Shown here: in pieces, positions 1 to 59,100 of the stretch
Numbering within the stretch: position 1 is the first letter of the stretch
Layout: the number at the start of each line of letters is the position of its first letter
DNA from: Macrostomum hystrix
Taxonomy: Eukaryota > Animalia > Platyhelminthes
Reading direction: 5' to 3'
DNA: 64,000 nucleotides
NCBI GenBank assembly: GCA_950097015.1
Contig: CATNEN010000025.1
Location: 3,224,001 to 3,288,000 of the forward strand
Translations under genes and position numbers: made by a program
The notes under the pieces: model-generated
Database searches by the model: none
The model's input: the letters and a program-made list of their open reading frames with translations, nothing else
Told to the model about the DNA's origin: nothing

Positions 1-1763
1 GGGGAAAAATTGGGAATATTTTCCTGTCCTCAGTTCCTCTTAAATACTATATACTCGTAAATTAGCTGCACCAATTTTCCTTTCGCGAATTTACCTTTTC
101 CTAAACACTGTCTTTCCTGTTGCCCATTAATCTCTTCAATCTCTGACTTTGAATATCGACAATTTTTTTTTTAATTACAGGGAGTAGTACCCCTCCCTCT
201 GTATCTTCCTCACTTTCTCTCTCTCCCTGTTTCCTGGTCTCCCGTCTCCCCCGTCTCCCCCTCTCTCCTTCTTTCTCCCTTTCTCCCTCTCTACCTCTCT
301 ACCTCTCTCTATGTCTGCCTCTCTCTGTCTCCCACTCTCCCTCTCTCCCTCCCGCCCTCTCTCTCTGCCTCCTCTCTCTGTTTCTCTCTTTCTCCCACTT
401 TTCCACTCTCCCTCTGCCTATCTCTATCCATCTCCATCTCTCAGAGCCAATGTTATAATTAGCAGAATGTTTCTGACTTAACGCCGCAGATACTACTTCA
501 CTTGACAATCGATCAAGTAGTCAGCAGATGCGTGTCAAACATTCCGTTTTTGAAAGCGAAATTTTTACAAGAGTTTTTTTAAGCTTTTAATTTATTTGCA
601 CTAGTGCAATAAATTATTTATTTCACTTTTCATCGATGCAAATAAATTTACGATAACACAGAACTATAACACAACCATAAACAAACAGAATTAAAAACAG
701 AATCGCTAAAATCGCTAAAAATAAAATTGTTTGCCCGTTTCAAGTTAGGGATACATATCATATTCCCCACTCATTTAGTTGTCTAGGGCCAAAAGCACTC
801 GGTATCTCGCTCATTGACCGAGGCGAAGCCGAATTAATAAACCATTAATTCCCATGCTTTAAGGGGTATCAATTTTGTTGTACCATAGACGTTTTTGCCC
901 AAGCTATACTTTCAGAGTCAGAGACGGGGGTGTGGGGCAGAGCCCCCACTTCGGGGTGCCATAGACATTTTAGCCTCAGTAAGCCATTCCTATTTTTGAC
1001 TTATCTATGGCGGTCCCGAGAGAGAAGGTAGTGGCCCTGCGGGCCTTGAACGAGGTTCTGCAGCTCTTGGCCACCTTGGTGGGTGGAACCGCGACGAAGA
1101 CGTGGCTGCAGTTTGGTTCCCAAAGCCCTACACACTGGTCCTCGGCGCCTCCGCCAATGATTGACGCGTCAGAGACTCAACTGCCGCGCTTGCTTAACTC
1201 CGGTCAGGCTTTTGCTCTTACCTTGCCAGTTACAAATACCGCCTCGACCAGGAGTCACCTGCCACCTGCTCACACACACACACACTTATCTATGGCCGAA
1301 ATTAAGTAAAAAAGTGGGTCATAACTTATACTTCTACTTCCGCGAAATGCCAAAGAAAGCTATACAACCCGGTACGCAGCACTTAGTTGGCATTTTTTAT
1401 GATACTCGGTTAGCAAACAAACTACACTTTTATCGAAGTATGTAACGTCGATGGCTTTCATTCTTTTCCTCTAATCTATTAAGAAGCTCAGTTCGCTTCA
1501 CATACAAAATCGCCATCTAGTAGAGACTTTCTGCCATATAGAATGCTTTCAACGGGCCTTTAATAAAATTCCTACCAAGTTGAAGTTCTGCGTCCTGAGT
1601 TTTTTTAGTAGTCCTTGGTGAAGTCACACCTAATAGTTCTGTCTATGGATTTGAGGGTCGAAATGAGTGGAATTCGAGGTCTGCGAAGCAGCCCCTCTAA
1701 TCCTTAGACAGAGCTGTGTTGTCTCATAATTTCAAGGGCGCCACAAGCATGATCAAGCATGAT

Positions 1764-34567: not shown

Positions 34568-35669
34568 GCAGTGAGACTCTGGCAGCCCACAGTCGATGGG
34601 CAAATATTCTCCTGACAAGTTAGGCCGAGCTGATTGGCAAAGCAGATCAGACAAAGATGGATGGATGGAGCACACGGCTGTGCCAATGCCACGTGCAAAG
34701 AGTCGGTCATGTTGGGCTGTAGCTCACAAAAGTGGATGGGGGCACCGGGCACAAGCGGAAACGGACGCTGGGCAAGCTGCATGGAAAACAGGCTTGACCA
34801 AGCACCTGCTTGATCAGCTGTTGAAAGAAGCTGATCACGAAGATGAGGACCTGGGAGGGGAGGCGCCTCAAGCCGCAGAGGCTGCAATCAGTTGATTGGG
34901 GGCAGCGTCAGGGCCGAAAAAGCACGCGCCAGCGGCCCCCTGAAGTGGCCAGGGATTATTATCGGCTTAAATCGGCATCGATGGCTGATAATGAGCGATA
35001 ATCCGTTAGTAGCGAGACAAAATCTACTATGGCATTGGGGGCAGAGACTCGATTAAGCCGGCCATCTGTAGCTTAAACTGTCTTTTACCTTTATGAGCCT
35101 GTCCGACTTGAACCGTATCAGTTTCCGCAACTCTTACTATAACTCTCTCTATCTGTCTCTCTTTTATGTTATTCTCCGTAACTGCAGTTTGCTTCACAAT
35201 CCATCTGAATTAATAAGTTTTTCTTCTGCACCCTCCTTCTAGCCATCTACTATCTCTAGTTTTTCTTCTACCCTTTGAAAACATAAAACTATTTTAGTTT
35301 ACTCATTTCTATTGCATCTCCTGTCTCTATCTTCCCTCTCCTGTCTTTCTCATCTCTCTCATCACTCTCTCCTCTCCATTTCCTATCAATCAACTCTGTC
35401 TCTTCTCTCTCCTCTCTCTCCCTCTCTCTCTCCTCTCTCTCCTCTCTCTCCTCTCTCTCCTCTCTCTCCTCTCTCTCCTCTCTCTCTCCTCTCTCTCCCC
35501 TCTCTCCCTCTCTCTCCTCTCTCTCCCTCTCTCTCCTCTCTCTCCCTCTCTCTCCTCTCTCTCTCCTCTCTTTCTCCTCTCTCTCCCGCTCTCTCTCCCT
35601 CTCTCCCTCTCTCTCTCTCCTCTCTCTCCTCTCTCTCCTCTCACCCGCTCTCTCTCTAGCGCTAGGCTA

Positions 35670-35714
35670 GACTCTACTGATGAGCTCCAAAAAGAGCGAA
35701 ACGCGTCTGGAGTT
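35670..35714 (+). ncRNA. Minimal type I hammerhead ribozyme, copy 1
   Basis: Stem I GACUCUA/UGGAGUU; core CUGAUGA; stem II GCUC-CAAAAA-GAGC; GAAA; palindromic stem III ACGCGU; predicted cleavage after GUC at 35707. Confidence 0.9.
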
Positions 35715-36005
35715 GCCATGGTTCGAATCCTGATTTCATTTTTTTCGATACATATCGGAATCGATTCCAACATTAGATTTTTGAAATTCAATGGGCAGTG
35801 TCCTCTCTCCTCTCTCCCACTCTCTCTCTCCCTCTCTCCCTCTCTCTCAGGCCAGCACCGGCGTCTCGTACGACCGAGTCAGTGCCACGGAGTTGAGTGA
35901 GTATGGATTGAGTTGCGGGGCGCTGCCGAATCGATTACGATATGTTGAGATTGAAAGCTGGATTTGAACAAGCGCCTATAGTCTAATGGCTAGAGCGCTA
36001 GGCTA

Positions 36006-36050
36006 GACTCTACTGATGAGCTCCAAAAAGAGCGAAACGCGTCTGGAGTT
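36006..36050 (+). ncRNA. Minimal type I hammerhead ribozyme, copy 2 (identical, 336 bp downstream)
   Basis: Same core and stems; predicted cleavage after 36043. Confidence 0.9.
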
Positions 36051-37574
36051 GCCATGGTTCGAATCCTGATTTCAATTTTTTCGATACATATCGGAATCGA
36101 TTCCAACATTAGATTTTTGAAATTCAATGGGCAGTGTCCTCTCTCCTCTCTCCCGCTCTCTCTCTCCCTCTCTCCCTCTCTCCCTCCCTCTCTCTCATCT
36201 TTCTCTCCTCTCTCTTCTCTTCTCTCCTCTCCTCTCCTCTCTATCCACTCTGTAACTATGCATAATAAAGTGTCCCTCTCCTCTCTCTCCTATCTACCCT
36301 CTCTCCTCACTCTTCTCTCTCCTCTCTATCCCCTCTGTATCTCCTCTCTCTGCCTCCTATCGTTCCCCTCCCCTCCTCTTTCCTCCTTCTCCTCTCTCTA
36401 CTCTCTCCGCTATTTATAACTCGTAGATGTAGCCAGCTTGTACTATTTCTCCAGTCTCTCCAACTCCAGTCTCCAGTCGCTGTATCTCTGTATCTGTTTA
36501 TCTCCCCTCCATTATCACTTTATAAGGTTATAAGCTTATTCTTAGCCGCTACAGAAAGCCTATTATAAAATCTGGATTAAATTTGAACGCTTTCTCAATA
36601 ATTGCTTCATAGCAAAACAACAGAGAAAAAAATAGACAAAGGCTGAATCACGATTTCAGGATTGACTTTAAGCTCTCAAATAAATTGACGGAGGCAGCGG
36701 TTATAGTGGCAGCTGCGGGCAAGTCAGCGGGTTAAAAAATCAAATCGTACTCGCCTAAACACTGCTCAAATAGATTGTTGCAGTTTTTGCAACAAAAAAG
36801 AAACCCGGATTGAAACCGGACCCAACGAAGGACAAAGCATCAGCGTGGAATAGGATCAGAGAGAAGCCAAGGGAATCTCGTTATGCACTCAGCGGATGCA
36901 GAGAGAGGGGCTAGAGAGGAGAGGACTGGATGAGAGGACAGGAGCTAAAAAGAGGACTGGACCTTAAAAAAAGAGAGAGAGGAATCGGTTAATGATGAAT
37001 TGATGTGGGAGTTGAGAACAGCGCCAGATCCCCAGGTGGGCTCCGAGCACGGCGGTTGTGCCCGTCCGCTACCCGCCGCCCCACCTCATTATTCCTCTAC
37101 CTCTCGCCCTCAGCCTTCGTTTCGCCTTTACTCGCCGTTTTTTGTTGCAAAGTCAAGCCGCAGCCTCAGCCGCCAACCCTCCCCTGCTGTCGTCCATTCT
37201 ATATTGAGCAGGTGTCTTTGGGGTTCTGATGGCAAATCGCGTCCGCTGCTCAAGTTAAGCACCCACCCCCGCCATCTGGCACCCCCCAGTAGCCATATTC
37301 CAACGGCTTTACTCAGTGTCTGCGGCAGAATCAGTTGCCCTTGTTATAGAAAATATCAGTGAAAAAAATTTTCCATTAGCAACTATCAATAGTAAGGATT
37401 TGTTTGATCAGAGCTTATCATTGACATTTGCCAAAATATTTCTTTCTCATTTTGGTCAACAGCAGCAGTTCGATGCTCAACAGGTAAATACGCGCGTAAA
37501 AATTGGTTAAAATTTCTGAAATTTGTTATGGCATTTTGTTTCATTGGTCATGTTGGTGAGACAAAAAAGGGACG

Positions 37575-39110
37575 AGGGAAAATGCTGGAGCAGAGATGAG
37601 GGTAGGAGAGGATTTGAGAGGGCGAGATGAGGGATAGAGAGGATTTGAGAGGGCGAGATGAGGGATAGAGAGGATTTGAGAGCTTAGATTAGGGATAGAA
37701 GGAATTTGAGAGGGTGAGATTAGGGATAGAGAGGATATGAGAGGTGAGATTAGGGATAGAGAGTATTTGAGAGGGTGAGATTAGGGATAGAGAGGATATG
37801 AGAGGTGAGATTAGGGATAGAGAGGATTTGAGAGTTTAGATTAGGGATAGAGAAGATTTGAGAGTTTAGATTAGGGATAGAGAGGATTTGAGAGGTGGGA
37901 TTAGGGATAGAGAGGATTTGAGAGGTGAGATGAGGGATAGAGAGGATTTGAGAGGGTGAGATTAGGGATAGAGAGGATTTGAGAGGTGAGATTAGGGATA
38001 GAGGGAATTTGAGAGGTGAGATGAGGGATAGAGGTAATTTGAGAGGTGAGATTAGGGATAGAGAGGATTTGAGAGTTTAGATTAGGGATAGAGAGGATTT
38101 GAGAGGTGAGATGAGGGATAGAGAGGATTTGAGAGGTGAGATTAGGGATAGAGGGAATTTGAGAGGTGAGATGAGGGATAGAGGTAATTTGAGAGGTGAG
38201 ATTAGGGATAGAGAGGATTTGAGAGTTTAGATTAGGGATAGAGAGGATTTGAGAGGTGAGATGAGGGATAGAGAGGATTTGAGAGGGTGAGATGAGGGAT
38301 AGAGAGGATTTGAGAGGTGAGATGAGGGATAGAGGGAATTTGAGAGGTGAGATGAGGGATAGAGGTCATTTGAGAGGTGAGATTAGGGATAGAGAGGATT
38401 TGAGAGTTTAGATTAGGGATAGAGGGAATTTGAGAGTTTAGATTAGGGATAGAGAGGATTTGAGAGGTGAGATTAGGGATAGAGAGGATTTGAGAGGTGG
38501 GATTAGGGATAGAGAGGATTTGAGAGGTGAGATGAGGGATAGAGAGGATTTGAGAGGGTGAGATTAGGGATAGAGAGGATTTGAGAGGTGAGATTAGGGA
38601 TAGAGGGAATTTGAGAGGTGAGATAAGGGATAGAGAGGATTTGAGAGGTGAGATGAGGGATAGAGGGAATTTGAGAGGTGAGATGAGGGATAGAGGTAAT
38701 TTGAGAGGTGAGATTAGGGATAGAGAGGATTTGAGAGGTGACATTAGGGATAGAGAGGATTTGAGAGGGTGAGATTAGGGATAGAGAGGATTTGAGAGGT
38801 GAGATTAGGGATAGAGAGGATTTGAGAGGTGAGATTAGGGATAGAGGGAATTTGAGAGGTGAGATGAGGGATAGAGGTAATTTGAGAGGTGAGATTAGGG
38901 ATAGAGAGGATTTGAGAGTTTAGATTAGGGATAGAGAGGATTTGAGAGGTGAGATTAGGGATAGAGAGGATTTGAGAGGGTGAGATGAGGGATAGAGAGG
39001 ATTTGAGAGGGTGAGATCAGGGATAGAGAGGATTTGAGAGGTGAGATTAGGGATAGAGAGGATTTGAGAGGTGAGATTAGGGGTAGAGATGAGCTTAGAT
39101 GTTGGGAGTT
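37575..39110. repeat. About 30-bp purine-rich minisatellite (GAGATTAGGGATAGAGAGGATTTGAGAGGT)
   Basis: Tandem units; most contain one TTAGGG. Confidence 0.95.
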
Positions 39111-43375: not shown

Positions 43376-44171
43376 TCGTGGAATAAAAAATTCTTTGAAA
43401 CTATAATTTTATTTCTCAAAATATTGAATGCATTGGATCGCTCATTAGAGGTTCTAAAGCCATAAAAAATGACCATATTTTTCTGCGTACAACAGGTCGA
43501 GGTTCTGATTATTATAAATTATTCATGAAATTGATTAGCTAGTTTGCTGGTAGCTTACATCGGAATAGCGCCAAAAGTGTGGTAAAAAATGAAAAAGATT
43601 TTCAGTACGTAGATTGCTGTTCTGTATTTCAGAAAAGTGCGATTTTAATTAGCAAATTAAGTGAAAAAATATATACCGAAATACTAATTGTTGTCATTTA
43701 TCTAAGGCTGTTTCTAAAATCTGTCGCAATGGCCAAACGAAAAATCGCTTTTAGAAAATGGTAGCCGCCATATTTAACTATTAGCAGATTGCATGGGTAA
43801 GGACACAGCTGACTATCATGCTAGTCTGGCTTCGGCGTATGGCTGTGCAAACACACTCAAACTCGCACACACACTCACCGAAATGACTGCCTAAATAGAG
43901 AACTCCAAGGCCCAATCAGCATCGAGCCCTGCTGCACTGTTCGCTTCTCAAAGCAGAGAGAAGGCGAGAGAAGAATCTTTAAGTGTCAGAGACAACTTTC
44001 TGGGCTGGGGCCCTGGGTGAAAGGGGGCCAGATCCTGCGAGGACCAGGATCAGACAGCTCTGCCATTTTTGCAGGCTTCTCAAGTCCCGCTCGGAGCGGC
44101 GCAACAACAAGAGCGCCGAGGCCAAGTCCAAGAGCGGCAGCCGCAGCAGCAGCTGGGCCAGCGGCATCGGC

Positions 44172-47100
44172 ATGGGCTGCGGCCCGTCCTCCAGCGAGGA
44201 CAACGCTGACGAGAAGGAGAAGGACAAGGCTAATGCGTTATCCAGGGCTTCCGTCGGTGAGATCAGTATTAAATCAGCCGTGCTCATTCAGAAGTGGTAT
44301 CGGCGCTACAAGGCCCGCCTGGAAGCTAGACGGCGGACGACCTGGATGATCTACCAGAGCATCGAGTACTCCAGCGAGGCCAGTCAGCTGCATCTGTACA
44401 ATTTCTTCAACGACATGCTGAGCCTGACGGGTGGCGGGCAACCGGCCGGAGCCGCCGCCGCGGCTTCGATCACTCCTTTGTCGGCCTGCCGCGGACACCG
44501 CAGATTCACGGAGCGCTTCCGCCAGCTCAGCCAGGAGGAGGAGGAGCGCGAACTGCTGGATCTCACCAGCTTCGCCGAGTTGTCTATTGAGAAGAATTAC
44601 CGCGGCCCGCACCTGGCCTTTCCGTTGAGCGCCAGCCACGTGCAGCTGATGATTGACAGCTTCAGGCAAGGCGGCCAGCTGCATGCCCGCTACCTGCTGC
44701 AGCTGCTGCACGAGACCCGACTGGCTCTGCGGGCCAAGCCGAACATCCACCAGGCCAGCACCAGCATCTCGCGCCAGGTCACGGTGATTGGCGACCTGCA
44801 CGGCAAGCTGGACGACCTGCTGGTGGTGTTCTACAAGAACGGCCTGCCGGATGTCACCAATCCGTACATCTTCAACGGTGACTTCGTAGACCGGGGCGCC
44901 AACTCCGTCGAGGTGGCGGCGCTGCTGTTCGCCTGCCAGCTGGTCTGGCCGACGGCGGTCTGCATCAACCGGGGTAATCACGAGGATCACGTGATGAACT
45001 GCCGATACGGCTTTATCAAGGAGGTGCAGACAAAGTACAGACATGCGGCTAGCAAAATTGTCAAACTGTTCTCCGAGGTGTTCGCCTGGATGCCATTGGC
45101 CACGGTAAGTCGCATTGGGATTCGGTTTCATTCGGGAGTTCGGTGCTTTAGAACTCACTCGAGGGTCGGGAGTTCGATTCTCATTCCAAGAATCCCAAAA
45201 GCTTCAGTTCATCCGACCGTAAAAAAATGAGTACCAAAATTAACTGCGGGTAGAACTTGGGTTGTATCAATTGGTGACACTGGACCCACAGTCAGCGAGG
45301 AGGCAATTCTGCCCATTCCGCTGACTCCTGACTTTCAGGCAGTGTACACTCTCACAGCCTCCAAGCCTTTTCTCCGCGGCTGCGCCCCAAATGAATGTGG
45401 CCTCGCCGCGGAATCGAGCTCAGGGACCTTGGTGCAAGAGGCAAACGCGTTTGACCGCTCTGCCACTGAACCGCCTCCTACTGGCGGCCAACTCAGTCTA
45501 AGAACTGAACAGGTGGATTTGGTTCTCAGATTTTTTATTTAGAATCACAATAATTAGACTGAAACATCCAAGGTGATTGACGAGCGCATCTTTGTGGCTC
45601 ACGGCGGAGTGTCGGACAAGCTGGACCTGGCGCTGCTTCGTCGCCTCGACCGGCACAGATACCTGTCAGCGTTGAGGCCACCAGGCGCTGATGGTGAGAA
45701 GGTTGACTACCTGGAATGGCGCCAGGTGCTGGACCTGCTGTGGAGCGATCCGAAGCCGCAGCCGGGCTGCAAGCCGAACACATTCAGAGGCGGCGGCTGC
45801 TACTTCGGACCCGACATTACGGAGGGTTTCCTGCGGCGCCATCGGCTGACGCTGCTAGTCAGGTCGCACGAGTGCAAGCCAGACGGCTGGGAGTTCTGTC
45901 ACGGCGGCTCTGTTCTCACCGTATTCTCGGCCTCCAATTATTACGAGGAGGGCAGCAACCGGGGCGCCTACGTGAAGTTTGACAGCTCCGGCAAGCCGCA
46001 CATTGTGCAGTACATGGCCAGCAGGTCAAGGAAGCTGCCAGTGGGCAGGCGGTTGTCCACAGTTGAGGAGGGCGCGCTGAAGGGCCTCAGAGCCCGGGTG
46101 CTGGCGACCAAGACTGACCTGATGGCGGCGTTTCAGAGGCTGGATCCAGGCAAGACCGGGGCCATTCGGCTGGCCGACTGGTGCCAGGTGATCATTCAAA
46201 TGATCCCATCCTCAAATGATCCCATCCTTAAATGATCCCATCCTCAAATTATTCTATACTCAAATGATCCCATCCTCAAATTATCCTATACTCAAATTAT
46301 CCCATCCTCAAATTATACTATACTCAAATAATCCCATCCTCAAATTATCCTATACTCAAATTATCCCATCCTCAAATGATCCCATCCTCAAATGATCCCA
46401 TCCTTAAATGATCCCGTCCTCAAATGATCCCATCCTCAAATGATCCCATCCTCAAAAGATTCCATCCTCAGATTATCCCATCCTCAAATTATCCCACCCT
46501 CAACTTATTCCATCCTCAAATGATCCCACCCTCAAATTATTCCATCCTCAAATGATCCCATCCTCAAATGATCCCATCCTCAAATTATTCCATACTCAAA
46601 TGATCCCATCCTCAAATTATCCTATACTCAAATTATCCCATCATCAAATGATCCCATCCTCAAATGATTCCATCCTTAAATTATCCCGTCCTCAAATGAT
46701 CCCATCCTCAAATGATCCCATCCTCAAATGATCTCATCCTCAAATGATCCCATCCTCAAATGATCCCATCCTCAAATGATCCCATCCTCAAATTATTCTA
46801 TACTCAAATGATCCCATCCTCAAATGATGAAATCCTCGAATCGGCATTTTCGAACAAAACGCTAAAAGCATTTCACGCGAGATTAGAAACTGATTTAAGA
46901 TGCACGCCGTTCTTTAGAAAGGAAAGTAGCGTTGTTTTTGTTCACAAGCGATCGGGTAACAAGAATATGTAACAGGTGGATATTTCAGTTTAGCCACATT
47001 ACTATAGAAACAAGCAGTTGTGATTTATTTAGGTAAAATGAGAAGCCATGATAAGACCACGAAATTTTACAATGCGCTCAGAAATCTAGGTCAATTTTTT

Positions 47101-56171: not shown

Positions 56172-59100
56172 TCAGGCGTTGGTGCCAGTTTGGCCCTTCT
56201 GCAGCGGTCGCTTAAATATCCAACAGTCTTCGTCTTCATCTCTGACAAAATATTTCACCGGAAATTGGATGCCGCGCTCGCGTCTCAGCTTCTCGCAGTG
56301 GCGCTGCCGCTCCTCCAACTGGGGAATGGCGGGCGGGTGGAGCATGGCTGTGCGCTTTTTAGATTGCAAAGTACATTGAGAAATACATTAGAATGGGAGG
56401 GAGAGCAAAAAAGAAAATGGGGGCAAGAAGTAGAGGGGAGAGCGCTTGAAGAAGAGTTGAACTCGGAAGAAGAAGAGGGGAGAGCGGAAGAAGAAGAGAG
56501 GAGAGCGGGAGAAGTAGAGAGGAGAGCGGTTGAAGAAGAGGGGAGAGCGGTTGAAGAAGAGGGGAGAGCGGTTGAAGAAGAGGGGAGAGCGGTTGAAGAG
56601 AGGAGAGCGGTTGAAGAAGAGAGGAGAGCGGTTGAAGAAGAGGGGAGAGCGGTTGAAGAAGAGGGGAGAGCGGTTGAAGAAGAGGGGAGAGCGGTTGAAG
56701 AAGAGGGGAGAGCGGTTGAAGAAGAGGGGAGAGCGGTTGAAGAAGAGGGGAGAGCGGTTGAAGAAGAGGGGAGAGCGGTTGAAGAGAGGAGAGCGGTTGA
56801 AGAAGAGGGGAGAGCGGTTGAAGAAGAGGGGAGAGCGGTTGAAGAAGAGGGGAGAGCGGAAGAAGAAGAGGGGAGAGCGGTTGAAGAAGAGGGGAGAGCG
56901 GAAGAAGAAGAGGGGAGAGTGGTTGAGAGCAGAGCGGAAGAAGAAGATGGTAGAGTGGAGAGCGGAGTGATAAGAGAATCAAAGCAGTAAGTTCGCAGCC
57001 ACTCACTTTTCTTTTCTCTTCAGTGGCTCTCTGAATGTCGTTGGTGCGCAGAGCTTCGGTAACGGGTGCCCAGAGTCGGCGTGATTCGAAAGCCCGTTGC
57101 AGGCCAAGCGGACAGACTAGTTTGGGAGCAGTTGGCAGGAAGCTGACATCCACCAGGCGCTTGTCTCTGGGCACATCCGCCGCAGGCTGATAGTCGAACT
57201 CCAACTGGCCGTTCCACTCGCCGGAGACTCGGCAGACAACGGCGCCGGACGGGTTTCGAACCTCGGCGCTAATCCGATGCAGCCGGCCGCCGTAGAATGG
57301 CTTAGTGTGAAAAAGCACGGAGGCATTGTAGCGAGTTTTCGGGCAGCTGATGGTGACCTTGTCGCCCAGCTCCACCCAGGGCACGGTGAGAATGGACCTG
57401 GCGTAGGCGCTAGGCAGGGTGATGTTGTAGGTCTCGTCGTGTCGCAGCAGGTTCAGCTGGAGGCGGCCAATCATGTTAACGCCTATACTCATGCCCATGA
57501 ATTTGCTCTTGGTGTAGATGCTGGCGTTAAGCCACAATTGCTTCTGCGGACACTCCAGGTAGAAGGCGGTCACTGGCGGATGATGCGACACCTGCTCGGC
57601 GGTGTACACGATTGCGCAGTCGTCGCCGCCACTGTCGGTTGGCAGTCGCCAGGAGCAGTGGAAGGTCTCGCCAATCAGCGGGTTGTACGGCTTCTTGGCG
57701 GTGGCTCCCTGGATTTGATTTTACACGGAATCAGAGCGAATGCAATGAGGATTTAGAGTTTTCCTATTTATGAATCTTTTATTAAGGATCCCATCCAGGG
57801 ATTTTTAACTAGCATTTAGTTATCCCTTACAAATTTAGGCATTATTTAATAACGATTAAAGTGCTCTCGTTAACGGATTTTTGTGAGAATTTATAATTAT
57901 CGAATATTACGGATTTCAAATTATCCCAAAATCCTGTATTATCCAATGAGGATTTCGTGTTTTTCGATACAAGGATCATTTATTAAAAGGTTTGCATTTG
58001 CAGGAGGGCTGTGGGCCATGGCACACCATTTGGTGACACTAGACCCGCAGCCAGCGAGGAGGCAATTCTGCCAATTCAACTGACTCCTGAGCACACACGT
58101 ACTCAGATACTGTACAACAGGCACACGCTCACACAGAGTGTGTACATCTGCCCTCACTTTCTCATCGTCACTGCGCATTGGAGGTTGGACCTCAGGGGGA
58201 GAAAATTGCACGACAAGCCCTCAAGCCTTCTCTCGGCGGCTGCGCGCCAAATGAATGTGGCCTCGCCGCGGAATCGAACTCAGGGACCTTGGCTCGAGAG
58301 CCAAACGAATTAAACCACTTGCTACTCAACACATTATTGAAGCTAGATAACTATTAATGCTATTAAGCATTAGAAATCAAAAAAATGTCCTTTATTCAAG
58401 TTAAATTCAGTTTTAATTCACCTTTTAAACTAGCCTATCAATAGCTTAGTTCAATGGCGCAAACGGACCTTGAAATGAAAATAAATTTGAATTCAAACAA
58501 TCGGGACTCACCCGCCTACCGCCGTGAAAGCCAGTCAGGTACCATTCCAGCACGCCAATGATGCGAGACTCGGGGTCAGGCTGATCGGCTGCTTTTAGCA
58601 GGCAGCTGGGATGGAGCATGAAATCTGAGAACATTTCTAATAGGGAACGCCTCTCCAAGATGAAGGTTGGCAGCACCACCCTGGTCAAGTCCATGCCCAG
58701 CTTCAGCTGCTGAAGCAGGTGCAGGATCACAGACTTGTGCTCCTCCTGCTGATCCTGCTGCTGCTGCTCGGGACTATCAGACTCAGACGTGTCCGGCTCG
58801 TCATCCTGATGAGGCACGGGCATAGCCGGATTCTCCAGCATCTCCACTAGGGGCACAATCGCCGCGAATGATATTGAGTCGCTGGAATAAATTTGTTTAA
58901 ATGGCGACTTTTAGAAATGGTAAATTTACTTTTAAACTATTTTAAATTACCCTCAAAGATTACTGCGGGCATTGAAGGATTACTGCGGGCTTTGAAGGAT
59001 TACTGCGGGCTTTGAAGGATTACTGCGGGCTTTGAAGGATTACTGCGGGCTTTGAAGGATTACTGCGGGCTTGGAAGGATTACTGCGGGCTTTGAAGGAT

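Follow-up and report, generated by a model that had tools for sequence, protein, structure and literature searches.

A hammerhead pair in Macrostomum hystrix as the probable product of one young, non-autonomous retroelement insertion

Animal type I hammerhead ribozymes with a palindromic helix III act as dimers (PMC4209133, PMC7229834), and two kinds of mobile element that carry them are pertinent here. Penelope-like elements (PLEs) are marked by heavy 5′ truncation, partial tandems that form pseudo-long terminal repeats (pLTRs), a short terminal tail and a bias to microsatellites (PMC8557442). Retrozymes without long terminal repeats (non-LTR retrozymes) give, in other animals, circular RNAs (circRNAs) of 170-400 nt that are reported to be highly self-paired (PMC7229834), and animal retrozymes have been proposed to derive from the pLTRs of PLEs (doi 10.64898/2026.07.22.740005). 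Features described for these elements include tails of 30-40 bp, internal initiation of reverse transcription and large target site duplications (PMC8557442, PMC11167929, PMC7229834), and one PLE starts reverse transcription inside multimeric RNA, hammerhead cleavage not being needed (PMC11167929). Considered here is a 525-bp insertion with two hammerheads, one member of a family whose copies record the copying process, in a stretch of 64,000 nt from the flatworm Macrostomum hystrix (assembly GCA_950097015.1, contig CATNEN010000025.1, positions 3,224,001 to 3,288,000 of the forward strand); this whole stretch is referred to as the window, and positions are counted from its first letter.

Schistosomes provide a further comparison. 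In work of 1998 (cited in PMC2770079 and PMC8490949) Ferbeyre et al. reportedly found a tRNA-derived part and an active type I hammerhead together in Sm-alpha, a repeat of about 335 bp resembling a short interspersed element (SINE), and found its multimeric transcripts to be cut to unit length. The reading favored here for the M. hystrix locus is not far removed: it is likely to be one young insertion of a non-autonomous hammerhead retroelement, either a non-LTR retrozyme or an Sm-alpha-like SINE, and one that probably depends on the enzyme of a PLE.

Two hammerheads in one insertion

The locus carries two canonical animal type I hammerheads, identical to each other, on the forward strand and 336 nt apart, and they are the ends of one insertion from a dispersed young family, not the outcome of a local duplication. 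A first-pass annotation of the window had proposed such a pair with all core residues, stems I and II, and ACGCGU as stem III, and all are present. The 31-nt core from CTGATGA to GCGTC occurs only twice in the window (35677-35707 and 36013-36043, forward strand), with a chance expectation of virtually none (0 in 100 shuffles). Each hammerhead has CUGAUGA, GAAA and the GUC cleavage triplet, a helix I of 7 bp that includes two G-U pairs, and a helix II of 4 bp with the loop CAAAAA. Helices I and II are paired, with helix I open, in both the Infernal alignment and the minimum free energy (MFE) fold, and helix III is the palindrome ACGCGU, unable to close on itself. The minimal type I architecture with palindromic stem III that had been claimed thus agrees with that of the published dimer-dependent hammerheads of animals (PMC4209133, PMC7229834).

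The Infernal comparison with Rfam models that had been suggested for the pair bore it out in alignment, but not at the database's own cut-off. Both copies span the full length of Hammerhead_HH9 (RF02275) at 38.1 bits and an E value of 4.6e-8, and 26 nt, from CUGAUGA through GAAAC, equal the model consensus. The gathering score of HH9 is 52, the match being visible only under E-value thresholds, and a scan at gathering thresholds returned no match for either hammerhead. The shortfall arises because the 5-nt helix III loop is absent and the outer part of helix I is imperfect. MFE cofolding of the two hammerheads did not give the helix III duplex, the energy model preferring an alternative CGUC/GAUG pairing, a result with little bearing on the active fold.

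What is repeated extends well beyond the ribozyme. The direct repeat is of 189 nt, not 45 (35658-35846 against 35994-36182, 99% identity), and what had been taken for a tandem ribozyme pair is neither an array nor a dedicated dimer; it is a partial tandem, the upstream copy of which is 5′-truncated at unit position 148. The unit is numbered with 35847 as position 1, and the parts of the insertion are as follows.

35658-36182, forward strand: whole insertion, 525 bp or 1.56 units, with unit positions 148-336 followed by 1-336; 99.6% to a concatemer of the unit (L001)
35658-35846, forward strand: upstream 5′-truncated copy, unit positions 148-336, with hammerhead 1, B box, T7 and CT tract, and without A box
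35670-35714, forward strand: hammerhead 1, helix I included; predicted cleavage 35707/35708
35708-36043, forward strand: 336-nt monomer predicted if both ribozymes cut, with a rod-like fold
35847-36182, forward strand: complete unit, positions 1-336, with internal region, tRNA-like head containing hammerhead 2, body and CT tract
Unit positions 1-125, forward strand: internal region
35972-36005, forward strand: tRNA-derived 5′ half, unit positions 126-159; A box at 35979-35989 (unit 133-143), TAGTCTAATGG, family consensus TAGCCTAATGG
36006-36050, forward strand: hammerhead 2, helix I included, unit positions 160-204; predicted cleavage 36043/36044, between unit positions 197 and 198
36056-36066, forward strand: B box, GGTTCGAATCC, 11/11 to consensus, unit positions 210-220; upstream copy at 35720-35730
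36076-36081, forward strand: T6 run, resembling a terminator of RNA polymerase III (Pol III), 10 nt past the B box, unit positions 230-235 (T6 or T7); T7 at 35739-35745 in the upstream copy
36138-36182, forward strand: CT tract, the near-invariant 3′ end of the family, unit positions 292-336; upstream copy at 35802-35846

The 336-bp unit has no open reading frame (ORF) beyond low-complexity ones. A scan of ten of the window's ORFs, the largest of 25 that reach 180 aa, gave no reverse transcriptase, in keeping with the earlier view of the element as non-autonomous. That description was right about the ribozymes, but had overlooked that A and B boxes of tRNA type surround the ribozyme, that copies have a fixed end at the CT tract, and that the targets are CT satellites.

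The hammerhead is nested between the two boxes, which have a tRNA-like spacing of 66 nt. Judged by eye against the Pol III type 2 consensus, the A box matches at 9/11 positions (10/11 in the family consensus copy). ARAGORN, at default thresholds and with or without introns, gives no tRNA cloverleaf, which leaves similarity to tRNA at the level of the promoter only; its calls at lowered thresholds are spurious. A box, hammerhead, B box and T run would together give an RNA of about 110 nt which, ending before the CT tract, would hardly be the template for transposition. On its sequence the module may be a relic of a SINE ancestor, a promoter that is read through, or the source of a ribozyme RNA that pairs in trans.

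A small family with one fixed end

In the genome searched, 220 Mb in 42 contigs, at least 40 full units match 35847..36182 over the whole length at 95-100% identity. If up to 3 mismatches are allowed, the hammerhead core is found 92 times, and a 29-nt motif close to the 3′ end is present at least 129 times; reversed-pattern controls for both searches gave 0. A single locus in the genome, which the first-pass annotation had named as an outcome that would count against its reading, is thereby set aside. Mean divergence from the family consensus is about 2.5%, and the window copy, with only three differing positions, is among the youngest members. In one copy (L074:813-1149, C5:511310) the tRNA-like 5′ half, A box included, has been lost through a deletion of 45 bp; the deletion junction is also in a contig of the public run X9, whose source is thus the same genome or one very close to it.

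A census of 111 mapped copies shows how unequal the two ends are. Almost all copies have the CT tract as their 3′ end, 5′ ends are variable, and copy lengths are continuous from 0.27 to 1.58 units. Position 1 is no natural end, since 44 of the 45 copies that reach it extend at least 23 nt further into the upstream CT tract. In the commonest long class, about 25 copies of 1.08-1.19 units, the unit is framed by a CT-tract direct repeat of 25-45 nt. In-register hammerhead pairs one unit (316-336 bp) apart are present at about five of roughly 80 hammerhead-bearing loci, and the census disclosed no tandem array, 1.58 units being the maximum and no locus having three hammerheads in register.

The window's two repeats differ at one of 144 comparable positions and have in common 181A and 208A, both of them non-consensus and the latter present in only 5 of the 111 aligned copies; at another locus (L023) the repeats share variants in the same pattern. 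Such shared rare variants, with the lack of an end at position 1, rule out two independent insertions. The template included the junction of CT tract to position 1 and was thus longer than one unit.

Are the 5′ ends a record of ribozyme cleavage? About 83 of 129 copies read through the predicted site at 197/198, and templates were therefore uncleaved or religated. The 5′ ends peak in the upstream CT tract and at unit positions 162 and 167, both of which begin CT, and these peaks fit 5′ junctions made through CT microhomology with the target. Of 18 loci that have the 3′ motif and no core, 8-10 (L084-L094) have their first base in the interval 190-198 of the unit, no more than 8 nt from where cleavage is predicted. 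Reading 5′ ends as a simple record of cleavage was rejected, as most of these starts keep 2-8 nt upstream of 197/198; they could reflect a halt of the reverse transcriptase, either at the fold of the ribozyme or at a junction.

Size-variant units were likewise rejected as the source of hammerhead spacings of 300, 486, 503 and 680-690/1589, which come from separately truncated copies in one CT satellite or from a duplicated satellite block. The latter is exemplified at L031:4686-9459 (C38:21.52 Mb), where five identical 225-bp truncated copies (unit positions 114-336), spaced 1589 and 680-690 bp, lie in a long (GAGAGTGAGG)n array, the satellite block having been duplicated after one insertion and there being no larger element.

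The choice of target is as marked as the choice of end. At 101 of the 111 copies at least one 100-nt flank has C+T of 80% or more on the element strand, and at 52 both flanks do, against 2.6% of random 100-mers of the window; the orientation of the element relative to these CT-rich satellites is fixed, in one direction. The window copy itself sits in a tract that is CT-rich by composition from about 35250 to 36420. Where flanks are not simple repeats, target duplications of 22 bp (L065:960-1170) and about 80 bp (L011:1280-1940, with few mismatches) are seen, both of these being non-satellite insertions.

An AG-rich satellite with a unit of about 40 bp resembling GAGGGATAGAGAGGATTTGAGAGGGCGAGAT, almost no C and a GC skew of about 1.0 occupies 37560-39000 of the window, 1.4 kb downstream of the insertion and of strand polarity opposite to that of the CT tract hosting the element. 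The window also has exons of a PPEF-like phosphatase (43983-45230, forward strand; IQ, PPP5 and Metallophos domains) and of an oxysterol-binding protein gene (56359-57609, reverse strand).

Copying and the source of the enzyme

The genome has PLEs. Pfam GIY-YIG is above cut-off at 4 loci, and a PLE ORF comprising the C-terminal part of the reverse transcriptase and GIY-YIG, used as query, has at least 134 genomic matches with open frames of up to 750 aa, the 750-aa frame and one of 666 aa being on contig C8. Downstream of at least 17 of these matches, at 160-320 nt and on the same strand, lies a hammerhead whose last letters are CGAAACGCGTC, a block that the hammerhead of the 336-bp unit has as well. 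Helix II variants linked to PLEs are compensated (GCAC/GTGC, GGCTA/TAGCC, GTCC/GGAC, GATC/GATC and GGGAA/TTCCC). A pattern search for hammerheads ending in GAAACGCGTC gave 152 genome-wide against 3 in controls, about half of them PLE-type, and at least six hammerhead families have GAAACGCGTC (with helix III ACGCGU) invariant and differ in helix II with compensating changes. With core and ACGCGU unchanged, this covariation of helix II supports the fold well on comparative grounds; the uniformity of ACGCGU could come from common descent or from pairing between families. The unit shows 5′ truncation, partial tandems and a terminal tail, all features of PLE type (PMC8557442), and a PLE may well be the partner that supplies the enzyme.

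One PLE family was seen in 5′-truncated copies within a satellite of 20-bp period (L102:916-2086, also L103 and L104; C33:1847065, C3:9328007 and C7:2134129). It encodes the C-terminus of reverse transcriptase and GIY-YIG in a 275-aa open frame, and in L103 there is an adjoining inverted truncated copy. About 200 nt past the stop codon is its hammerhead, which is of the minimal kind and runs from CUGAAGA to CGAAACGCGUC; just 3 bp make up its helix I.

How then might an insertion such as that in the window be made? At a CT-rich satellite whose AG-rich strand is nicked, the CT tract of the RNA would anneal to that strand and reverse transcription would begin there, and the fixed orientation fits such priming by the AG-rich target strand. 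Synthesis would run 5′-ward beyond one unit on a template longer than one unit, whether multimeric transcript or circle, and the 5′ junction would form by microhomology. For the window copy synthesis would have stopped 189 nt into the second round, and its having entered that round would leave an identical second hammerhead 336 nt upstream. On this scheme the tandem pair would be a by-product of the mode of insertion, like the pLTR of a PLE. The window copy would nonetheless be among the few able, if transcribed across both motifs, to form a double hammerhead via ACGCGU and to release a rod-shaped 336-nt monomer, which a ligase could circularise. The monomer has a predicted MFE of -120.3 kcal/mol, a z of -4.36 relative to 100 shuffles; its ends are joined by helix I in a predicted rod, and it has an 18-nt inverted repeat at 35750-35767 and 35928-35945. 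A circle explains the permuted copies, and an externally transcribed genomic copy of 1.13 units explains the main class equally well; multimeric or partial-tandem transcripts are slightly preferred over a circle as template.

Several observations weigh against such PLE-dependent copying of a hammerhead retroelement. The T6 or T7 run should stop Pol III ahead of the CT tract, so that a promoter of tRNA type could not easily make the template. The unit and the PLE family just described have nothing in common beyond the 11-nt helix III block and the low-complexity CT tract, and no family hammerhead adjoins a PLE ORF among the matches listed. For the PLE studied in vitro the start site of reverse transcription lacks homology to the target and the hammerhead can be dispensed with (PMC11167929), which makes annealing-primed initiation a proposal for the present family and no PLE hallmark. 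Variant bases are as frequent in the hammerhead as in the rest of the unit (1.7-2.9% against 2.3-2.5%), a comparison which, in so young a family, cannot reveal selection on the hammerhead. Eleven public runs are listed, all as contigs, and the family is present in the four examined; such contigs, RNA or DNA not being stated, give no starts, ends or circular junctions. The lack of any copy above 1.58 units, counted here with the adverse points, speaks neither for nor against a circular template.

The alternatives are taken in descending order of probability. A strict circular-RNA retrozyme cycle, in which transcripts with two hammerheads self-cleave, the 336-nt monomer is circularised and rolling reverse transcription from the CT tract gives copies of 1.x units, is possible though on the unlikely side. 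The copies are circularly permuted and do not end naturally at position 1, their reading through of the cleavage site is what a religated (or uncleaved) template allows, the same rare variants are in both repeats of a locus, and both the predicted rod with its ends joined by helix I and the circRNAs of non-LTR retrozymes in other animals (PMC7229834) are as such a cycle would have them. However, copies with three hammerheads or of more than 1.58 units would be welcome to it and there are none, the commonest class can come without any circle from the 1.13-unit genomic copy transcribed from outside, a complete monomer is obtainable from only about five loci, the public contigs provide neither RNA ends nor junctions, and uncleaved multimeric RNA is the dominant PLE substrate in vitro (PMC11167929).

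A more elaborate proposition, and a distinctly doubtful one, is that three features act together in a combination not previously described: a split Pol III promoter of tRNA type around a dimer-dependent hammerhead, by which every copy could emit a ribozyme RNA of about 110 nt pairing in trans through an ACGCGU helix III that is the same genome-wide; a rod-like monomer; and oriented integration into polypyrimidine satellites, guided by RNA-DNA annealing. Were all three true, the element would be a retrozyme with its own promoter and its own targeting, borrowing only the reverse transcriptase.

Quite improbable is an ordinary SINE of tRNA origin whose A and B boxes direct Pol III transcription and which is mobilized by a long interspersed element (LINE) with a shared CT-rich tail, the hammerhead being a passenger and the pair arising through a second insertion into the tail. 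The boxes themselves (A at 9-10/11, B at 11/11) and their spacing suit this, as does the nearness of the tRNA-like 5′ end (unit 126) to where the longest copy (127, L036) and several single-unit copies (128-136) start; targeting of CT tracts makes the element's own tail a possible target, and 5′ truncation with a microsatellite-like tail occurs in LINE/SINE pairs. Yet the T6/T7 run comes 10 nt past the B box, upstream of the tail that has to be copied, while 127 nt upstream of the promoter are copied all the same in about half of the insertions, and ARAGORN recognises no tRNA fold even with introns allowed. Moreover no copy begins at position 1, so the 336-to-1 junction was in the template and is not the seam of two insertions, and rare variants common to both repeats of a locus are likewise contrary to a second insertion. 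Least probable of all is that the module of about 110 nt (A box, hammerhead, B box, T run) is a functional Pol III RNA that dimerises in trans via ACGCGU with hammerheads of its own family or of PLEs, for although it has the full layout of a type 2 gene with terminator, most copies have a single hammerhead, a form nearly inactive alone in published work (PMC4209133), and the helix III block does not vary between hammerhead families of the genome that diverge in other respects, the idea is pure inference, the invariance may reflect common descent and the window's upstream copy is without an A box.

The locus among known hammerhead elements

Taken alone the locus is of modest interest, being an ordinary, very young member of its family that, like few others, carries two ribozymes. 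It is the family, small (about 130 copies), young and cleanly bounded, that for these reasons records its copying: the start in the CT tract is fixed, the cleavage site is mostly read through, ends favor the next CT tract and insertion is oriented. This makes it tractable for asking whether the template is circle or multimer, whether helix III pairs between copies, and whether a ribozyme RNA is made from a tRNA-type promoter.

With PLEs and their non-autonomous derivatives (PMC8557442, PMC4209133, PMC11167929) the unit shares 5′ truncation, the truncated-before-full arrangement of a pLTR, a tail, microsatellite bias, and a hammerhead that lies within the repeated part and has the CGAAACGCGTC block found in the genome's PLE hammerheads. 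In contrast to PLEs it has no reverse transcriptase/GIY-YIG ORF and no detectable similarity to L102-L104, and boxes of Pol III type are not a PLE feature. The hammerheads differ too, that of PLEs being minimal, with CUGAAGA, a bulged U and a helix II of 5-6 bp, whereas that of the unit is canonical, with CUGAUGA and a 7-bp helix I. The match to HH9 should not mislead: the Rfam family is an intronic hammerhead of amniotes, whereas the present context is a repeated element and not a conserved intron.

The likeness to non-LTR retrozymes (PMC7229834; doi 10.64898/2026.07.22.740005) is in the canonical type I hammerhead with 4-bp helix II and tiny palindromic helix III, the ORF-less unit of about 300 bp (336 bp here, 150-450 bp for the class), a monomer predicted to be highly self-paired, large target site duplications, and co-occurrence with PLEs carrying minimal hammerheads, and platyhelminths are among the many phyla where such retrozymes are known. 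Unlike the dimers to multimers of that class, the copies here are dispersed, of at most 1.58 units and mostly with a single hammerhead. A fixed CT-tract 3′ end with oriented insertion into CT-rich satellites, and a ribozyme between tRNA-type A and B boxes, further set them apart.

Sm-alpha and Sj-alpha of schistosomes are said to be SINE-like repeats of similar length that likewise combine a tRNA-derived part with a type I hammerhead, and by layout Sm-alpha is the nearest named relative, layout and not sequence homology being the basis of the comparison. For S. mansoni tRNAscan-SE gave 2,368 tRNA-Gln-TTG-derived genes or pseudogenes, of which all but a few, 2,342, are Sm-alpha-like SINEs (PMC2770079); that the program calls them implies that the tRNA part of Sm-alpha is contiguous. 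Here, by contrast, the hammerhead splits the tRNA-like part, no tRNA is recognised, and copies number about 10^2, not 10^4.

In its working, then, the locus resembles a non-LTR retrozyme or a PLE-dependent SINE-like element, and most likely it is one. As far as such elements were found described, what it adds to the known kinds is a ribozyme nested between promoter boxes, copies that are dispersed and not arrayed, and oriented insertion into CT satellites.

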